This document shows, one piece after another, positions 7,014-27,349 of a DNA stretch of 64,000 nt. The notes beneath the pieces were generated by a model. It worked only from the letters and a program-made list of their open reading frames with translations, was not told the DNA's origin and made no database searches. The DNA is from Klebsormidium nitens (Eukaryota > Plantae > Klebsormidiophyceae). The DNA lies in contig DF237191.1 of NCBI GenBank assembly GCA_000708835.1, forward strand, positions 65,930 to 129,929. Reading direction: 5' to 3'. The translations under genes and the position numbers were made by a program. Numbering within the stretch: position 1 is the stretch's first letter; each line of letters opens with the position of its first letter.

Positions 7014-10000
7014 ATGCAAGCGGCGCAGCCAGGAGCAGTGGCTTTCCCGCAAGGTGTGGTTCCGGGCGGAATGCCTTCACAGCAAACGGACGAAAGAGAA
7101 CAGCTTGGCCAGGCGTTTGTTGATGCCTCGCATACAGCGGCACCTGAACTCGGCATGCAGGGGCAATTCGCAGGCATTGAGCAGAGTTTGTGGAACCAGA
7201 TCACGCAATTGGTGGGGAGCGAAGCTGGGGAAATGTTACGTGGCAGTCTGCTCCTCTCGCCGAACCAGGAAGCCGTGAGAAAGTTTCTGTTGGCCGGGGG
7301 GGTGGCTCAGACTCCGACGCAGCAGGGAGAGATTCAGGGGGATCAACCAAGCATGCAATGGCAGGCAGGTTGCGGAGCCCAAGAACCGCCGTCCGCGTTT
7401 CCGATGCAGGACGTTCCGTTTGAGCCCTCGAGCGGAGCCGGAACCGGGAGCCAAGAGGCGTCTCTCAGCGCATGGGAACTAGGAGGGCCGCCAACGGATG
7501 CAGTGACGTCAGGAGAAGCGGTGACGTCAGAGAAGCATCTCGAGCGCCAGAATGCATTCAGAATTCCATTCGGCGGGCACACCTTCGATTCGGAAGCCGT
7601 TCCGCAACCCCTCCACCTTGAACCTCTCAGTCCCGACGGTCGGTCTCCTGAGAATACCCAAGCAGTTAAGACTTTCCAAGAGGGACAACAGTGGGTAAAC
7701 CTCCAAAGCGGTCAGGAAACCGTGCGCCAAGGAATGGGTGGCCACTTTGCTAACGTGGCAAGCACTCAGGATCCCATCAACGTCCAATCGATGCCAAGCC
7801 CCAAGACTGCTTCGAAGGGCGACGCAACATGCGGTCCGCAAGGGGAGGTGTCCCCTCTGGCTGCGCTGCTGCGCACCTTCATCGCGACCGGCTTCGAGCG
7901 ACAGCCCTCAGAGAGTGCGCCTCAGGGCGGTGCTTTCGGATTTACTCCCCCGGCCCCTTCAAAGGGCTTCCCGGCGCAGACATTTCCTGCGCAAAAGCAA
8001 CCGGGGGGGCAGCCTTCTGTCCTCGGAGAATTGGGAACGAAGCAATCGGAAGAAGCGCGAAACATGCCTCAGGAAAACATTCTGCCCGAGCAAGTTTTAA
8101 GTGGGGTCTTTTCGGGTCAGCCGCTGCCGAATCCAAACGGAGGTTTCCCGAGGGATCCCTCTCAAGGGGGCAGCCAGCAATACCAGCCGGGGCAGTTCTC
8201 CGGTTGGCAGTCTCTAGCCGGCCAGCCTCCCGGAGAACAGAATGTGACGGGGGGTCGGCAAACGGTAGAGGCGCTCGGTGGGCAGGGTCCAACCGGTGGG
8301 CGAACACCGGTTGGTGGGCAGTTCTCGTTCGGTGGGCCGTTTTCGCGCGGTGGGGAGTTCCCGGGTAGTGAGCAGATTCCAGTTGGACAAGATGGGGAGA
8401 AGAGTCGTATCGGCTTCCAGAACGACCAGCGTCAAAGCGGAAATGTCGAGAACGCAGGCCTTCCAAGTGGGCACTTCTTGAGTGCTGGGAGTTCTGGTGG
8501 GCAGTTCGCCGGGGCGTATCTGCAGGCAGGGGGTGCAACGTCTCAGGTAAACCTTACATTCGTTATCCTCTGGCAGAACTTGGCAAGAACCGCGGTTGAG
8601 AGAAATGAAAACATGGAAGATTGACTCTAACGATAGCCTTTCAAAACAGCCTCTAGACCTGGATACTCACCGCCGATGCTGTGATTTGTGGACGACTTTC
8701 TGTGGACACTTTGCAGAAGACTACTACATTGTCCATCTTGCAGCACTTTATAAATAGAATTTTCAAACGGACTGCAACCACATCGTTTCAGAAGCCTCGT
8801 GGTAATCGAATTTCCCGTCTAGTTTTAAAGTCGAAAATAGGGCACAGTTTTGTCTCCTCTTTCCGACGACGTTACACCGTTCTGCAGGCCCCTTTTCCCG
8901 GCGGTTCATCACCTTCCGGACAAATTCCAAGAACTCCAGGAGCGTTTCCGAGCGGGCAACCTCCACAAATTTTCAATGAAGCGCCTCTGCAGACACCTTT
9001 CCCGCCCGCTTTTGCCGCGTCGAACCCGGATACCCAATTGGGGGGGCCGTTCACTCCGTCGCAACAACCCACTCCGCAGCGCGTTCCGGCCAGCGGACCA
9101 ACGGAACTGTACCCCGCTCCAAAAGCTCCGACTCAGATCGTTCACCAGCACTTTCAACCGGCACAAAGCGTCCCGGCGAATCCAAACCTGCTGTCGCCGA
9201 TAAGCCTTCCCGCCGCACGGGGCCCTCTCCCGGATATGCGGCGCGGGCCCCTATTCTCACAGATGCAAGCCCCGCCTTTTTTCCCGGGTCAAGTAAATCT
9301 TTACCCGGGTCAAGTTAATCCCGCCGGACCCGCCGCCCAAGGTCCAATTAGAGCCCAGTTCGCGTTCGCAACACCGTTCCAGAACGCCTTCCGGCCAAGC
9401 GGTTACCAATCGGCGCAGTTTCCGGTGCCCGGTCCAAGCCCCCAGTTCTTTCCACGGGGCCAACGACCGGCAACTTTTCGCCGGCCAGCCTCTGTGCCCC
9501 CGAACGTTCCGTCGTTCCGCCCGGGGGAGCGCTTCCGTCCGTCCGGTCCGCTGCCGCCCCAGAATGTGGCCTACCGAGGAACTACGTGGCGAAGTGACGG
9601 ATGGACTCCCAGGTTTGGTCCCCCGGGTGGAGGTTTCGGGAGAGGGGCCCCCAGGGGAGGAAGAGGGTGGCGCGGGGGTTCGCGCTTTCGAGTGCCTGAT
9701 AGAGGGAATCAGCCCGAGGTGAGGAATGCTTGGAACTTCTGGACATTCTAAGTCTTATGTTTGATAAGACAGGTACTTCAGATTGAAAAAGACCATAATC
9801 ATCCAAATGAAGTACGTGATCTGGTTCTAGATTTCGTAGTCTGCGCCCCAACAGCATCGACGTTCCGACGGGCTTATCCTTGCTCCAATGGCGCATGTTG
9901 GCGTTCAAGTGTCTCGTTGTTTGCATCGAGACCCATCTGTGCCGACTCTGCATTGGTCCTCTGATGTTCCAAGGTTCAAGTGGTGTCATATCTCTCTATA

Positions 10001-10941
10001 GGAAGTCGAGTTGGTCATGTTACATTTTTGAATCTTTCTTTATAAACAGATGATTGGCTACCTTTGACTGACTGGTTGAACCATTGTCTCGTCGTGTGCA
10101 GCGCCCGGCGTACGGACCGCGTCCGCGGTATGTACCGTACGTTCGCAGCGACGTCCTGCTGCGTCAGCGCATGACCTTCGAGCACGTGCCCCGAAAACGT
10201 CAGCACGAGGAGGAGGAGGCGGCACGTGACGAGAAGCGCGCGCATGCGCCTGACGAGAAGAACAAAGACGAAATCTCGCTCGAGAGCAGCGCGGAATCCG
10301 TGCAGAAAGATAAGAACAGGGGCGGAAGCGCGGAATCGGGTGTCGTCGAGAAGGCGAAAGACGAAGACCGCGAGAGAGAAGAGCCGGGGAAGCAAGAAGA
10401 ACGGGGGGCGAGCGAATTGCCCGGTAAAGAGGACCGGGTGGTTCCAAAGCGGACGCATGTCAGGTTTTCGGAGGAGCAAGGGGGAGCGGAAACGGCGGAG
10501 GAGCAGAACGGAACGGCCGGAGAGGCGGAAGGAGAACCGGTGCAAAGTCCGGCGGTCGTGAATGCTGTTCCTGGAAGGGGAGGACATGAAACAGGAAAGA
10601 AAGCAGTGGCCTTCACGGAGAGAAGTGAGCTCACCAGAAACGGGCAGGAGCGGAACGCGGATCCGACCGGAACCCGGAACGCGGGTTCCGGTCAGCGAGC
10701 GGAAGGAGCATTACCTGGGGCGCCCCCCGTCCAGAATGCTGTGTCGAACGCACTCCCAAGACCGATGCAACCTCAATTTCAAAAAGCAGCAAACAGGTAT
10801 ATGTCGCAACGGGGAAAAGTCGGTGTGGACGGAGCAGCAGCGGATGCGCATATGCCGCAGCGAAACAAAGCGGCGGGAGCAGCCGTGACGTCGTATACGG
10901 GTCAGGTTCTGGAAGCCGCGGCGCTTTTGGGTGCGATTTGA
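7014..10941 (+). CDS. Large intrinsically disordered P/G/Q-rich protein with an RGG box, function unknown (~1070 aa)
   Basis: Three long ORFs join in phase 0 at canonical sites: 7014-~8546 (TCTCAG|gtaaac), ~8888-9718 (ctgcag|GCC ... GAG|gtgagg) and ~10101-10941 (gtgcag|CGC). Contains GFGRGAPRGGRGWRGG. An acceptor-like ctaacag at ~6995 suggests an upstream exon, and the C-terminus is uncertain. Confidence 0.7.
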
Positions 10942-23635: not shown

Positions 23636-26600
23636 TTAGGGTCCGGGTCGAGGTATAGCAGGGGACCCGGTATTGGTCGGGCCTGTAGCATACGTCAGGC
23701 CTATCCCCGTGATTGTCCTGTTGTAAAGCGGCTGAATGGGCCGGTTGTTTGTCCGGGCTCCGCCCGAGACCCCAGCAGTGGCGCTCATGAGAAGGATGAT
23801 CTGCGCCTGGGAAGCATAGCGCGGCTTGGTCGTGACGTACCTGCAAGCACGAGAAATGGGCGCACGTGCGAAGCTCAAATCCTGACCACATGCATATGAA
23901 CGAAGAGCGCCCTTCATAAATGTTGTGGTATTGAGCATACGAAGCTTCGAGAATAACGAATCCTGATGCAAAAGTCTATGCGGAAAGGGTGTACCAGTCC
24001 GCATTTCTGACGAGAACTCTCCCAAGTCCTTGAAAGCGAGCGTGAAGGCATGCTTATCGACGCGGTGAAGCGAAATCTGAGACGCCAATATAAGTACGCC
24101 CCTCATTGATATGCACGCGTTGGAAGACGCTAGCTAACTAGAACAAGCCACCTGCTTTACAATGAAGTTGCAATTGTTTTCCGTCTCACCAGGTGACGCC
24201 CTCAGTGCAGGGGGGCTGCGTCAGGCTGCCAACATAGGTGACGTAATCAGCGGGCCCGTTGGGAACCGTCACGCTCGTGAAGTCCAGTACCCTGCCCGTG
24301 CTGACGTTAGCCGGGCCTCCGGCGACGAACGGAACGATCCTGAAAAAGGAAGATAAGCTTCGGAATCTGACACTGTGGGCGCGTAGATGCCGTAGAACCA
24401 ATTTCACAACGCAAGGATTCGCTTTGTTCAAGTGGCATCACAAGCAAACGCAGGACCATGTCCGTCTGACCAAAAGATGGTGGTTGCAAGGTCGAAGTGG
24501 AAAAGATGGAACCAATTTAGGGTACTCGTGACGACGTGTGTTCGGTTATCCTAAAGAGCGTCCTTTCGAAAAAGCCTCGTTCGATTCCGTCGGGACGCAT
24601 CTCTCTCAGACGTACTCAATAAACCCTTGTAAAGCTTTATCTGACGGTGTGAAACCTAGTCTTGGCGCGGCAGCACCATCGTTCTGGCAGCCACTGCTTT
24701 GTGCTTTCGGGCTGTTGGGGCCAACCTCCACAGCACTCTGGTCGAACATAAGGGAGTCTAAGGTCACGAGTCCAAGACTTACTGGTCTAGCAACAGGTCG
24801 GGAGAGGTATTGCTGGAGAGATAATTGCATGAGAATATGAGCTCGCGATTTGAAAGACTCACCGGGCTGAGAATGGTTCGGCCGAAACATATTTGAAATG
24901 GTAAAATGCACTTACAAAAAACAACATAGCAGAAACGGAAAGCCGCGCTCAGGGTTCAAGCAAAAATTCGACCGATAGTGAGAGTAGGAGGTTGCGGGTC
25001 CAAAGGCTCACTGGTTCAAAAAGGGGTCAGGAGCGAAGTCTTCGGAGAGGTAGAACAGGATAGCTAGCACCGCGATTCTCTGGCCGGTCGCCGTCGCATC
25101 GCTCGACGTGCTGAGAAGGAAAGAGCGCTCGTTTGGTACGAAAACCGCTAGGAGATATCGTTTACAAAGAGAACAACTTTCAGTGGCTTTGACTCATTCG
25201 CTCCGTTCACCATCTTGACCCCCTTGCTGTACATAGCCTGGTACTGTGTATCTTCGACGCTTTTCTGCTCAATTGACGGGCAAAGAACGTCTGATGGGCG
25301 ATCACCCATTTTCGCTGGACTTCCTGATGTCGAGCAGAAGGCGCGCCGGTGGAAATACCAACAATCGTCGACAGAGGAACGAGCCCTTGGATGTCCGCTT
25401 GTGTGGACTCGCTGTCGTATCTGGTGCAGCAATGAGAAAGCCCTCGAATGCGCAGCTGTCGAGAGCGTAGTTCTTTCCTGAGCGCTGTTCAACAAGCCTG
25501 AGAACGTCCCCACGTAACGCTCTGTGACCACGTTTGGAGTCGGACGAGCGCATCTTTGACAACCGTTGTGGACGACGACAGCTGAGCCACTTTGTTTCAC
25601 ACTGCCCAGGGCTTGAATTTAAACCAATCAATGAAGCGAAATTCACCTGTGCACGTAGTGTGCCTCGAGCGTAGCGAGCTGTCCGTCAAGGGAGTGCTCT
25701 CCAACCTGGTGGAAGTGGATGTTGTGCAGATAGAACACGCTGCAAGCGTTGAGCAATCCAAAGCAAGGCGTTAGCAGGGGCGCTCTCTACCCGAAACGAG
25801 AGCAACGTAGAGCGAACCACTGCTGAGCGAAGGGAGGACCAGTATTCCAAGCTTCAAAGAAAAAGCAGCTCGCGATTAGACAGTGCGTCCTCGTAGCTGA
25901 TCAAGCACCGAACGTACCCTGTAAGGAGGCCTTGTTTTCTGAATAAAGGGTTTGAGCAGTCCAGGGCTTACGAATGAGACTCAAGGGCCTCATCAAGCGT
26001 TGGGCTTGAGCGTCGTATCCGGAGTCTCGCGCGGGCACTCCTTTTGTCTCACACGTTTCCTACCTTGTTCTTACTTATTGGAGGTCATGCTCCTCGCACC
26101 GGTTTGGAAGACAGTGACACTCATGGTCAAGGGCCTGAGTCGGGTAACCAATTCGAAGACGCGACTTACGTGCCGTCTGCCGCCGTCAGCGTGCTGTTGT
26201 TGTTCACCGGAATGATGACCCATTCGTTGTATGGAACTGTGTTCACCGCATAGTTGATCTGAGGCCGGTAGTCAATACGAATCGGAGGGGAGCTGGATAC
26301 GCCCGCAGACGCTGTGGAGATGTCTATGGGGGACTGCTGACGCCCAGCCTACGAAAAGAACAGAGACATGAACGAAAACATTGTCAGTAGAATTTCAGGA
26401 TTATGCGACATCTTCGGGTGGAAGATGACAAAATACTAGAACAAGGAGACGACAAAGAAAGACGACGTACTCAGATGGAAAAAGCGTCGAGTTAGGTTCA
26501 GCAGCACATGATTGATGCTGCCGTCACTATGATTTGGCTGCGGCATGGAATACATACAACACGTCACGTTGACTTGTTGGGGCAGAGGAGTGCTTCCTAA

Positions 26601-27349
26601 AGGGACAGGAGGAAGGATGCAATGAGTCCTGAAAGAAAAGGATAGAAGAAGGTTACGGCCCAGTTACGTTACAGTGGCCGAATGACTCAAGTGTTTTGGT
26701 AGCGCCCAACATTTCGTCGGTGTAGCAATGACCAAAAAAGATATGGGGTTCGACTCTCCGGTTCTCCTTCGGGAACTCAGTTGTGGTGGTCACAACCTCG
26801 AGCTACAAGCTCGGGTCTGCAAACTGTCGGTTCAAACCCGGCCACCGACATCTCCTCCCTTTTGCTTATCCTCTTTTCATTCCGTGAGACTATTCTCTTG
26901 TGTTTGATAACGTAACCCGTTTTTGGTAGCGAGACCGGTGTTGTTCTGGTAACGTAACCCAGCCAGGGGCAAAGGATCACACGCAGACGAGGCGTTTGAC
27001 CAGATTTGCCAGGTTAAAGGGAAGCTCACTCATTTGGAAAGCCTGCCTCTTCCACTGCAAAAGGGTACTTCACCAGGGTTAACCAAACTTAAAGTCAGAT
27101 TATCGCTGAGAGTTCAATGGTGCTTCTTCAAAAGCTCACCGTGCAGAGGCCGCCCCAGTCGGCTCCTGACTGCGAGTAGTTGAAGGGCTGTCCAGGTGTC
27201 ACGGGTGCCAGCATGCGCCGTCCAAACCTGGTCCCTGACCCTTTAACGGCGAGTTTGGTAGCACACGCATTGACCTGTTCAGTGAGTATGTGGACTACTA
27301 GGCCGAAGAGGACGACGCTGATACAGAGCCTCGGTTTCGCGTGCGCCAT
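23636..27349 (-). CDS. Alpha-carbonic anhydrase with an N-terminal signal peptide (secreted/periplasmic type)
   Basis: Six phase-compatible exons: 27140-27349 (hydrophobic leader, FNYSQSGADWGGLC), ~26170-26348 (GRQQSPIDI), ~25653-25743 (HNIHFHQVGEHSLDGQLATLEAHYVH, the three Zn-ligand His), ~25011-25110 (IAVLAILF), ~24188-24337 (YVGSLTQPPCTEGVTW) and 23636-~23841 (NNRPIQPLYNR). Confidence 0.93.
26716..26850 (+). ncRNA. Non-canonical tRNA-like structured RNA (135 nt, two T-arms), antisense within carbonic anhydrase intron 1
   Basis: Perfect 7-bp terminal stem GTCGGTG/CACCGAC plus discriminator-like A. T-arm GTCGG-TTCAAAC-CCGGC, second T-arm TGGGG-TTCGACT-CTCCG, D-like arm GTTGTG-GTGGT-CACAAC and anticodon-like arm CTCGAG-CTACAAG-CTCGGG. 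TTTT lies 10 nt downstream. No expression evidence is available. Confidence 0.6.

Follow-up and report, generated by a model that had tools for sequence, protein, structure and literature searches.

Intron 1 of an alpha-carbonic-anhydrase gene of Klebsormidium nitens harbors a 135-base element (26716-26850, plus strand) that is, in our estimation, probably a functional, structured, non-decoding tRNA-derived RNA gene. All positions refer to the window, which is the whole stretch of DNA analysed here (64,000 bases). Because a related alga, represented by the contig L097, keeps the element almost unchanged, it is very probably a working tRNA-derived RNA. Its sequence architecture, its conservation, its relationship to tRNA and its genomic context are described below, together with the alternative explanations on which each of them bears.

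Architecture and predicted fold

The first-pass annotation had described six helices and two T-loops, as well as a TAGC motif, an upstream CAA and a TTTT run. By direct reading and with RNAfold, all of these were confirmed at the coordinates given there. The parts of the element are as follows.

26716-26722, plus strand: 5' strand of the outer acceptor stem, GTCGGTG; seven perfect pairs with 26843-49 (probability ~1.0), invariant in L097
26723-26724, plus strand: U8 and A9, directly 3' of the outer acceptor 5' strand
26725-26733, plus strand: 5' strand of the closing helix, GCA-AU-GACC; predicted to pair with GGUC-UGC at 26814-20 (RNAfold 0.8-0.9 in both species)
26734-26743, plus strand: A-rich single-stranded linker AAAAAAGATA; L097 differs only by one base in the length of the A-run
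26744-26760, plus strand: inner T-arm (A), TGGGG/TTCGACT/CTCCG; in L097 TGAAG/TTCAACT/CTTCG, loop purine R57 retained
26761-26776, plus strand: acceptor-like hairpin GTTCTC-CTTC-GGGAAC with a CUUC cap, running on directly from T-arm A
26780-26796, plus strand: D-like arm GTTGTG-GTGGT-CACAAC, a 6-base-pair stem and a GUGGU loop with GG; probability ~0.95, invariant in L097
26797-26815, plus strand: anticodon-like hairpin CTCGAG-CTACAAG-CTCGGG; 6-base-pair stem kept in L097, tip variable
26816-26825, plus strand: variable-region-like linker UCUGCAAACU, its first five bases in the closing helix; invariant in L097
26826-26842, plus strand: outer T-arm (B), GTCGG/TTCAAAC/CCGGC, B-box-like and fitting GGTTCRANNCY; invariant in L097
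26843-26849, plus strand: 3' strand of the outer acceptor stem, CACCGAC, followed by the discriminator-like A26850

The minimum-energy fold of the element (-49.5 kcal/mol, z = -3.2 against shuffles; RNAfold) contains every helix listed in the first-pass annotation, each with a probability of 0.87-1.0, and separate RNAfold runs on each of the two species gave the same seven-helix fold. The closing helix, whose strands are 100% conserved in L097, is also present in the RNAalifold consensus. It turns the interior into a five-way junction in the thermodynamic folds of both species, and in these predicted folds it competes with the two outer pairs of the anticodon-like stem. According to RNAfold, the anticodon-like loop closes to an ACA triloop here and to a GNRA-type GCAA tetraloop in L097. 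T-arm B is contiguous with the 3' strand of the outer acceptor stem and, as in canonical tRNA, the acceptor has 7 base pairs, the T-stem has 5 base pairs and the T-loop reads UUCRANY. Since several G-U pairs (including U26765-G26772 and U26827-G26841) and both T-loop consensus sequences fit the plus strand only, this strand appears to be the functional one.

Conservation in a related alga

L097 is a 15.6-kb Logan contig (SRR23617307) of a related alga, on which the synteny of the tRNA-dihydrouridine synthase 3 (DUS3) gene and the carbonic anhydrase gene is retained. It was reached by a search with a 174-codon DUS3 exon, which returned three related proteins, one of them on L097. The orthologous element lies at 8930-9064 on the minus strand of this contig, in the same intron and again on the strand opposite to the carbonic anhydrase gene. 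By BLAST, the part of intron 1 that can be aligned to L097 is limited to window positions 26644-26850 (9144-8930 of L097, minus strand). The element itself is 93% identical; its 135 bases differ by 9 substitutions and two 1-base indels.

In a global alignment, identity in 40-base windows is 0.85-0.92 across the element and 0.8-0.9 across the flanking exons, and it falls to 0.3-0.55 over most other intron sequence, the conserved flanking motifs excepted. Over five exons, identity between the window and L097 at codon positions 1, 2 and 3 is 91.5%, 91.8% and 74.6%, respectively. The element thus changes at the pace of first and second codon positions and far more slowly than near-neutral sites. 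A 59-codon ORF overlapping the element was considered as a coding sequence and rejected; the two 1-base indels in L097 shift its frame, and the element is therefore non-coding.

The locus had been proposed to encode a non-standard, tRNA-derived RNA with two units of T-arm and stem, and the conservation of its structure bears this out: 35/35 of the proposed pairs are standard in both species, two of them changed on both sides and one converted from G-U to A-U. Compensatory changes, for which the first-pass annotation had suggested a search, are represented by the two double-sided pair changes, namely G26746-C26758 in T-stem A, which is A-U in L097, and G26761-C26776 in the capped hairpin, which is C-G in L097. 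G26747-U26757, also in T-stem A, is A-U in L097, and the purine at position 57 of T-loop A changes from G to A. The remaining three substitutions and a C insertion turn CU[ACA]AG into GC[GCAA]GC at the tip of the anticodon-like hairpin, so that all nine substitutions are confined to the inner unit or to this tip. Both linkers are invariant apart from the length change of the A-run in the A-rich linker.

When the pairing partners were slid by 1-3 columns, only 34-52% pairing was obtained, compared with 35/35 in register. Random placement of 9 substitutions changes at least two pairs on both sides with P = 0.006; a shuffle control was non-significant (139/500) and has little power with two sequences. 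Because only two sequences are compared, covariation supports the structure in a way that appears real but thin. The outer acceptor stem, the outer T-arm, the D-like arm, the anticodon-like stem and the closing helix are invariant, and covariation therefore neither supports nor refutes these helices. Nevertheless, all pairs (100%) of a structure drawn from a single sequence are retained in an ortholog that was found independently, where two of them have changed on both sides, and because of this the element is more than chance. As judged from the two genomes, the comparison demonstrates purifying selection on the predicted RNA structure.

Selection might also act on the DNA. In this explanation the locus would be a TFIIIC-bound insulator or an intronic carbonic anhydrase enhancer, and the RNA would be irrelevant. 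TFIIIC sites with a B-box alone are known, and the conserved flanking ACGT-core motifs GTTACGTTAC and ACGTAACCC resemble transcription-factor sites and extend the conservation past the RNA. However, it is RNA pairing, and not protein-bound DNA, that would be expected to produce the double-sided compensatory changes and the G-U to A-U change seen in two helices, and conservation spans all 135 bases, beyond the B-boxes. We consider a purely DNA-level unit very unlikely.

Relationship to tRNA

ARAGORN at default settings reported 0 tRNA genes in the element, with introns allowed or not, in agreement with the earlier statement that it does not fold as a standard or intron-bearing tRNA. Likewise, 0 family matches to the element were obtained with Rfam at gathering thresholds, and the layout accordingly lies outside the described Rfam families, as had been claimed. 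In a permissive Rfam scan the sole match was tRNA-Sec (RF01852), with 20.1 bits and E = 0.11 against a threshold of 47 bits. A resemblance to tRNA-Sec geometry had been pointed out before; it is weakened by this score of 20 bits in the present genome and by the lack of any score in the ortholog. Identification as tRNA-Sec was rejected: the triplet is ACA or GCA instead of UCA, the acceptor and T stems have 7/5 pairs, the 10-base linker is stemless, and the ortholog has no Rfam score. Vault and Y RNAs were rejected as well, and with them the suggested vault-RNA-like identity, as their Rfam models gave no match in the window or in L097 even at E = 10.

When 26725-26779 or 26723-26777 was deleted in silico, ARAGORN called an 80-base tRNA-Cys(ACA) at its default threshold. 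A covariance model built on the two sequences gives weak, full-length alignments to ordinary 72-75-base tRNAs from unrelated metagenome loci. The ARAGORN call after removal of the insert and these weak alignments indicate that the underlying topology is that of a tRNA plus an insert: a complete cloverleaf is interrupted after position 9 by 55 conserved bases. A single D-like arm and a single anticodon-like arm are common to two alternative acceptor/T-arm domains, the outer one free-ended and the inner one closed off by a tetraloop. In its 3' part, the insert forms a second T-arm that runs directly into a tetraloop-closed acceptor-like helix, which makes a second, capped 'minihelix' or elbow, and its 5' part is predicted to be able to pair with the variable region, closing the five-way junction.

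The same topology could be read as a decoding tRNA gene (Cys-type, ACA or GCA) from which a non-canonical intron of 55 bases, separating positions 9 and 10, is spliced to leave an 80-base tRNA. The default-threshold ARAGORN call after deletion of 26725-26779 favors this explanation, the L097 triplet GCA is likewise Cys, and ectopic tRNA introns are known from some algae (PMC3728597, PMC13578239). However, according to an EMBO J review, only canonical 37/38 tRNA introns are found in most streptophyte algae (PMC13578239). Furthermore, the supposed intron carries compensatory changes and is conserved as well as the supposed exons, and no bulge-helix-bulge motif could be drawn at the two junctions. 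The anticodon-like loop itself is not kept: it reads CUACAAG here and GCGCAAG in L097, positions 32, 33 and 34 differ, U33 (near-universal in tRNA) is lost, and the loop folds shut in both species. For these reasons a decoding tRNA was rejected, and ACA, which the first-pass annotation had read as the central triplet, does not hold up as an anticodon. Recognition by CysRS requires U73 and does not fit the discriminators, A in the outer unit and C in the inner unit, so that cysteine identity was rejected too. Overall, an intron-bearing decoding tRNA is quite unlikely.

A circularly permuted tRNA gene is another possible reading. Here, T-arm A and the 3' acceptor strand would be placed upstream of the 5' acceptor strand and the D and anticodon arms; the transcript would pass through a circular intermediate, RNase P and RNase Z would open the CUUC 'acceptor loop', and a tRNA-like leader-trailer clamp would be provided by the outer stem together with T-arm B. 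Permuted joins of 26771-26815/20/25 followed by 26734/40/44-26770 were called tRNA by ARAGORN at its default threshold, a 4-base-pair helix GACC:GGUC stands beside a bulge at the would-be junction, and intervening sequences of 1-74 bases as well as permuted tRNAs in green and red algae are documented (PMC3978253). But this bulge is one-sided and has 2 bases, not 3, and the second 3-base bulge is absent, which falls short of a proper bulge-helix-bulge motif. The variable region would have to hold the junction, a location that is not among the described types (PMC3978253). In addition, the anticodon loop differs between the two species, a C would occupy position 8, and the perfect, invariant T-arm and 7-base-pair acceptor stem in the leader-trailer would be left unexplained. 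We therefore give little credence to a permuted gene.

Potentially, the two units could also be parts of one precursor, a 'tRNA within a tRNA'. Either the outer ends and the CUUC loop would be cut by RNase P and RNase Z, or the splicing endonuclease would free the inner unit as a circle, and the outcome would be a permuted tRNA or a tRNA-like complex of two pieces with two acceptors. This route is unlikely in our view; if true, a nested or permuted precursor would be the first such tRNA-type gene in the streptophyte lineage ancestral to land plants.

Genomic context and transcription signals

The claim that the element lies antisense within a carbonic anhydrase intron was substantiated by reading of the splice sites and by a Pfam Carb_anhydrase match (E = 8e-7). 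The element occupies the middle of intron 1, on the strand opposite to the gene. Exon 1 ends near 27140, reading ...FNYSQSGADWGGLC, and exon 2 starts at 26348, reads GRQQSPIDI... and has a frame open to 26169; further exons carry HFHQVGEH and YVGSLTQPPCTEGVTW. The host gene, its neighbor and the sequence features around the element are the following.

~26349-27139, minus strand: host intron 1 of the alpha-carbonic-anhydrase gene, with a GT donor near 27139 and an AG acceptor at 26349; same arrangement in L097
29400-35961, minus strand: multi-exon DUS3 gene (Pfam Dus), directly upstream of the carbonic anhydrase gene
26651-26675, plus strand: upstream block GAAGGTTACGGCCCAGTTACGTTAC, 41-65 bases before the RNA start; 24/25 bases the same in L097 amid unalignable intron
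26657-72 and 26949-64, plus strand: 16-base inverted repeat GGCCCAGTTACGTTAC with 3 mismatches, bracketing the RNA gene; left arm inside the upstream block
26905-18 and 26947-60, plus strand: two copies of the motif ACGTAACCC, downstream of the RNA and inverted relative to the upstream block
26694-26704 and 26921-26931: perfect 11-base direct repeat TTTTGGTAGCG, flanking the element
26860-26863, plus strand: TTTT run, 10 bases past the RNA end; in L097 a TTTT lies ~20 bases past its copy

The zf-CCCH_DUS3L domain was found on the ortholog DUS3. The adjacency of a tRNA-modifying DUS3 to a tRNA-like RNA gene is probably a coincidence. Elsewhere in the window, three long consecutive ORFs of 536, 356 and 285 codons (7014-10941, plus strand) gave no Pfam match; they are unusual for an intron-rich genome and may represent a mobile element or a lineage-specific gene.

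Some of the flanking sequence is conserved together with the RNA. The left arm of the inverted repeat is identical in L097, and the right arm there (GTGACGTAAC) still makes 10 pairs, one G-U included. The first ACGTAACCC copy, 55-68 bases downstream of the RNA, is retained as GGTGACGTAACCC. These flanking motifs may be promoter or factor-binding sites, or the arms of a long-range stem, and the upstream block GAAGGTTACGGCCCAGTTACGTTAC is a possible promoter element.

With respect to internal signals, TAGC is found at 26723-26 (positions 8-11) and CAA at 26707-09 (-9 to -7). In the two-species comparison, the CAA at -9 was not conserved in L097 and no conserved TATA-like box was found at -30. 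The A-box at positions 8-18 (TAGCAATGACC) is poor compared with TRGCNNAGTGG, and a better A-box-like stretch lies in the D-like arm. The B-box of T-arm B (GGTTCGANTCC consensus) is good and is conserved in L097, as is the downstream T run, for which a Pol III terminator is a possible function. Because B-box-like T-loops, an A-box-like D region, a downstream T run in both species and a conserved upstream block are present, we infer that the element may be transcribed by Pol III.

The tRNA-like A- and B-box sequences, together with the perfect direct repeat TTTTGGTAGCG on either side of the element (from 26694 and from 26921), would also suit a functionless sequence, either the remnant of a tRNA-derived retroposon (SINE) or a tRNA pseudogene. 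In L097, however, the second copy of this repeat is absent and the first matches at only 7/11 bases; as the repeat is not found in the ortholog, it is no target-site duplication. The element is, moreover, far better conserved than third codon positions and the surrounding intron, every stem substitution preserves the pairing, and no A- or T-rich tail is present. Apart from the ortholog, no further copy was detected with the two-sequence covariance model in the window and in L097-L101 (~135 kb). The suggestion of a dimeric tRNA-derived SINE was therefore not upheld, given the lack of a second copy in the window and these five related loci, the orthologous position, the purifying selection and the TTTTGGTAGCG repeat missing in the ortholog. 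A relic of either kind is highly improbable.

Relatives were also sought more widely. A metagenome scan with the three-loop pattern GGTTCGA..GGTGGTC..GGTTCAAA returned 96 loci, none of them homologous by BLAST, and the covariance model found only ordinary tRNAs among these 96 loci. The pattern was too strict, because T-loop A of the ortholog reads AGTTCAA. Scans of viral and prokaryotic collections with the invariant core gave no match, exact look-ups of the ORFs overlapping or neighboring the element found none on record, and neither carbonic anhydrase exon 2 nor a non-coding upstream ORF, used as queries in protein searches, led to close relatives. Two further, more distant Klebsormidium-like genomes are present in JGI metagenomes 3300060284 and 3300060285 (contigs L098-L101). 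On these contigs the DUS3-carbonic anhydrase synteny is absent, being lost after DUS3, and no element was found in the DNA examined; the carbonic anhydrase loci of these two genomes lie beyond it and might carry additional orthologs. A primer-binding-site-like complement of the RNA 3' end was not found in the window.

Discussion

We propose that the locus is a free-standing, plus-strand small RNA gene, nested antisense in an intron, which would give rise to a tRNA-derived, non-decoding product of ~135 bases. After transcription by Pol III, RNase P and RNase Z would trim the transcript to the ends of the outer tRNA frame, and CCA might then be added. As a stable tRNA mimic, the product would present tRNA-binding proteins with two T-loop/minihelix surfaces and would have no adaptor role in translation. 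It is conceivable that such a mimic binds or titrates proteins that recognise the tRNA elbow or the acceptor-T domain.

The element shares a 7-base-pair acceptor, a 5-base-pair T-stem, a UUCRANY T-loop, a discriminator, U8, GG in the D-loop and a hairpin at the anticodon position with canonical class I tRNA, and its cloverleaf is valid for ARAGORN once the insert is removed. In contrast to canonical tRNA, it has a conserved, structured 55-base insert after position 9 and an anticodon loop that is not conserved, and the intact element is not detected by ARAGORN or Rfam. Position 3:70 of the element is C-G, in contrast to the G-U of alanine identity. With tRNA-Sec (RF01852) the element has in common that 6 base pairs make up the stem of both the D arm, whose loop is of the UGGU type, and the anticodon arm. 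tRNA-Sec genes have external promoters, which the upstream block of the element recalls. However, the element has no UCA, no long variable arm and no G73, and its acceptor and T stems are 7/5 rather than 9/4.

In bacterial YrlA the acceptor-like stem is capped instead of open, like the inner unit of the element. YrlA (bioRxiv 10.1101/312249) and the tRNA-like domains of tmRNA are non-decoding and copy the geometry of T-arm, D-arm and acceptor, as the element does. There is no sequence relationship to these bacterial RNAs and no Rfam match; the element differs from them in combining two tRNA-like units, and its outer unit has free ends that are predicted to be processable. In the permuted tRNA genes of Cyanidioschyzon, Ostreococcus and Micromonas (PMC3978253), too, the T-arm and 3' acceptor strand come first, and the 5' acceptor strand, D arm and anticodon arm follow after a very short intervening loop. 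Unlike these genes, the element has no canonical bulge-helix-bulge and no conserved anticodon, and it is enclosed by a second complete acceptor/T-arm frame. None of the families compared has all of its defining features in the element. The selenoprotein machinery and tRNA-Sec of streptophyte algae have been described (PMC6627142, PMC7539508, PMC13578239), and a double-elbow RNA is not described in these three papers. From its sequence, the element appears to belong to the tRNA-like non-coding RNAs, with an architecture that would be new among them.

In tmRNA, YrlA, mascRNA and viral tRNA-like ends, reuse of the tRNA fold gives access to the processing enzymes and binding partners of tRNA. A molecule with two T-arm/minihelix units, maintained by selection in an alga closely related to land plants, would be a new architecture among non-decoding tRNA-shaped RNAs, and such a double-elbow RNA could reveal a new partner protein or an uncommon route of processing.
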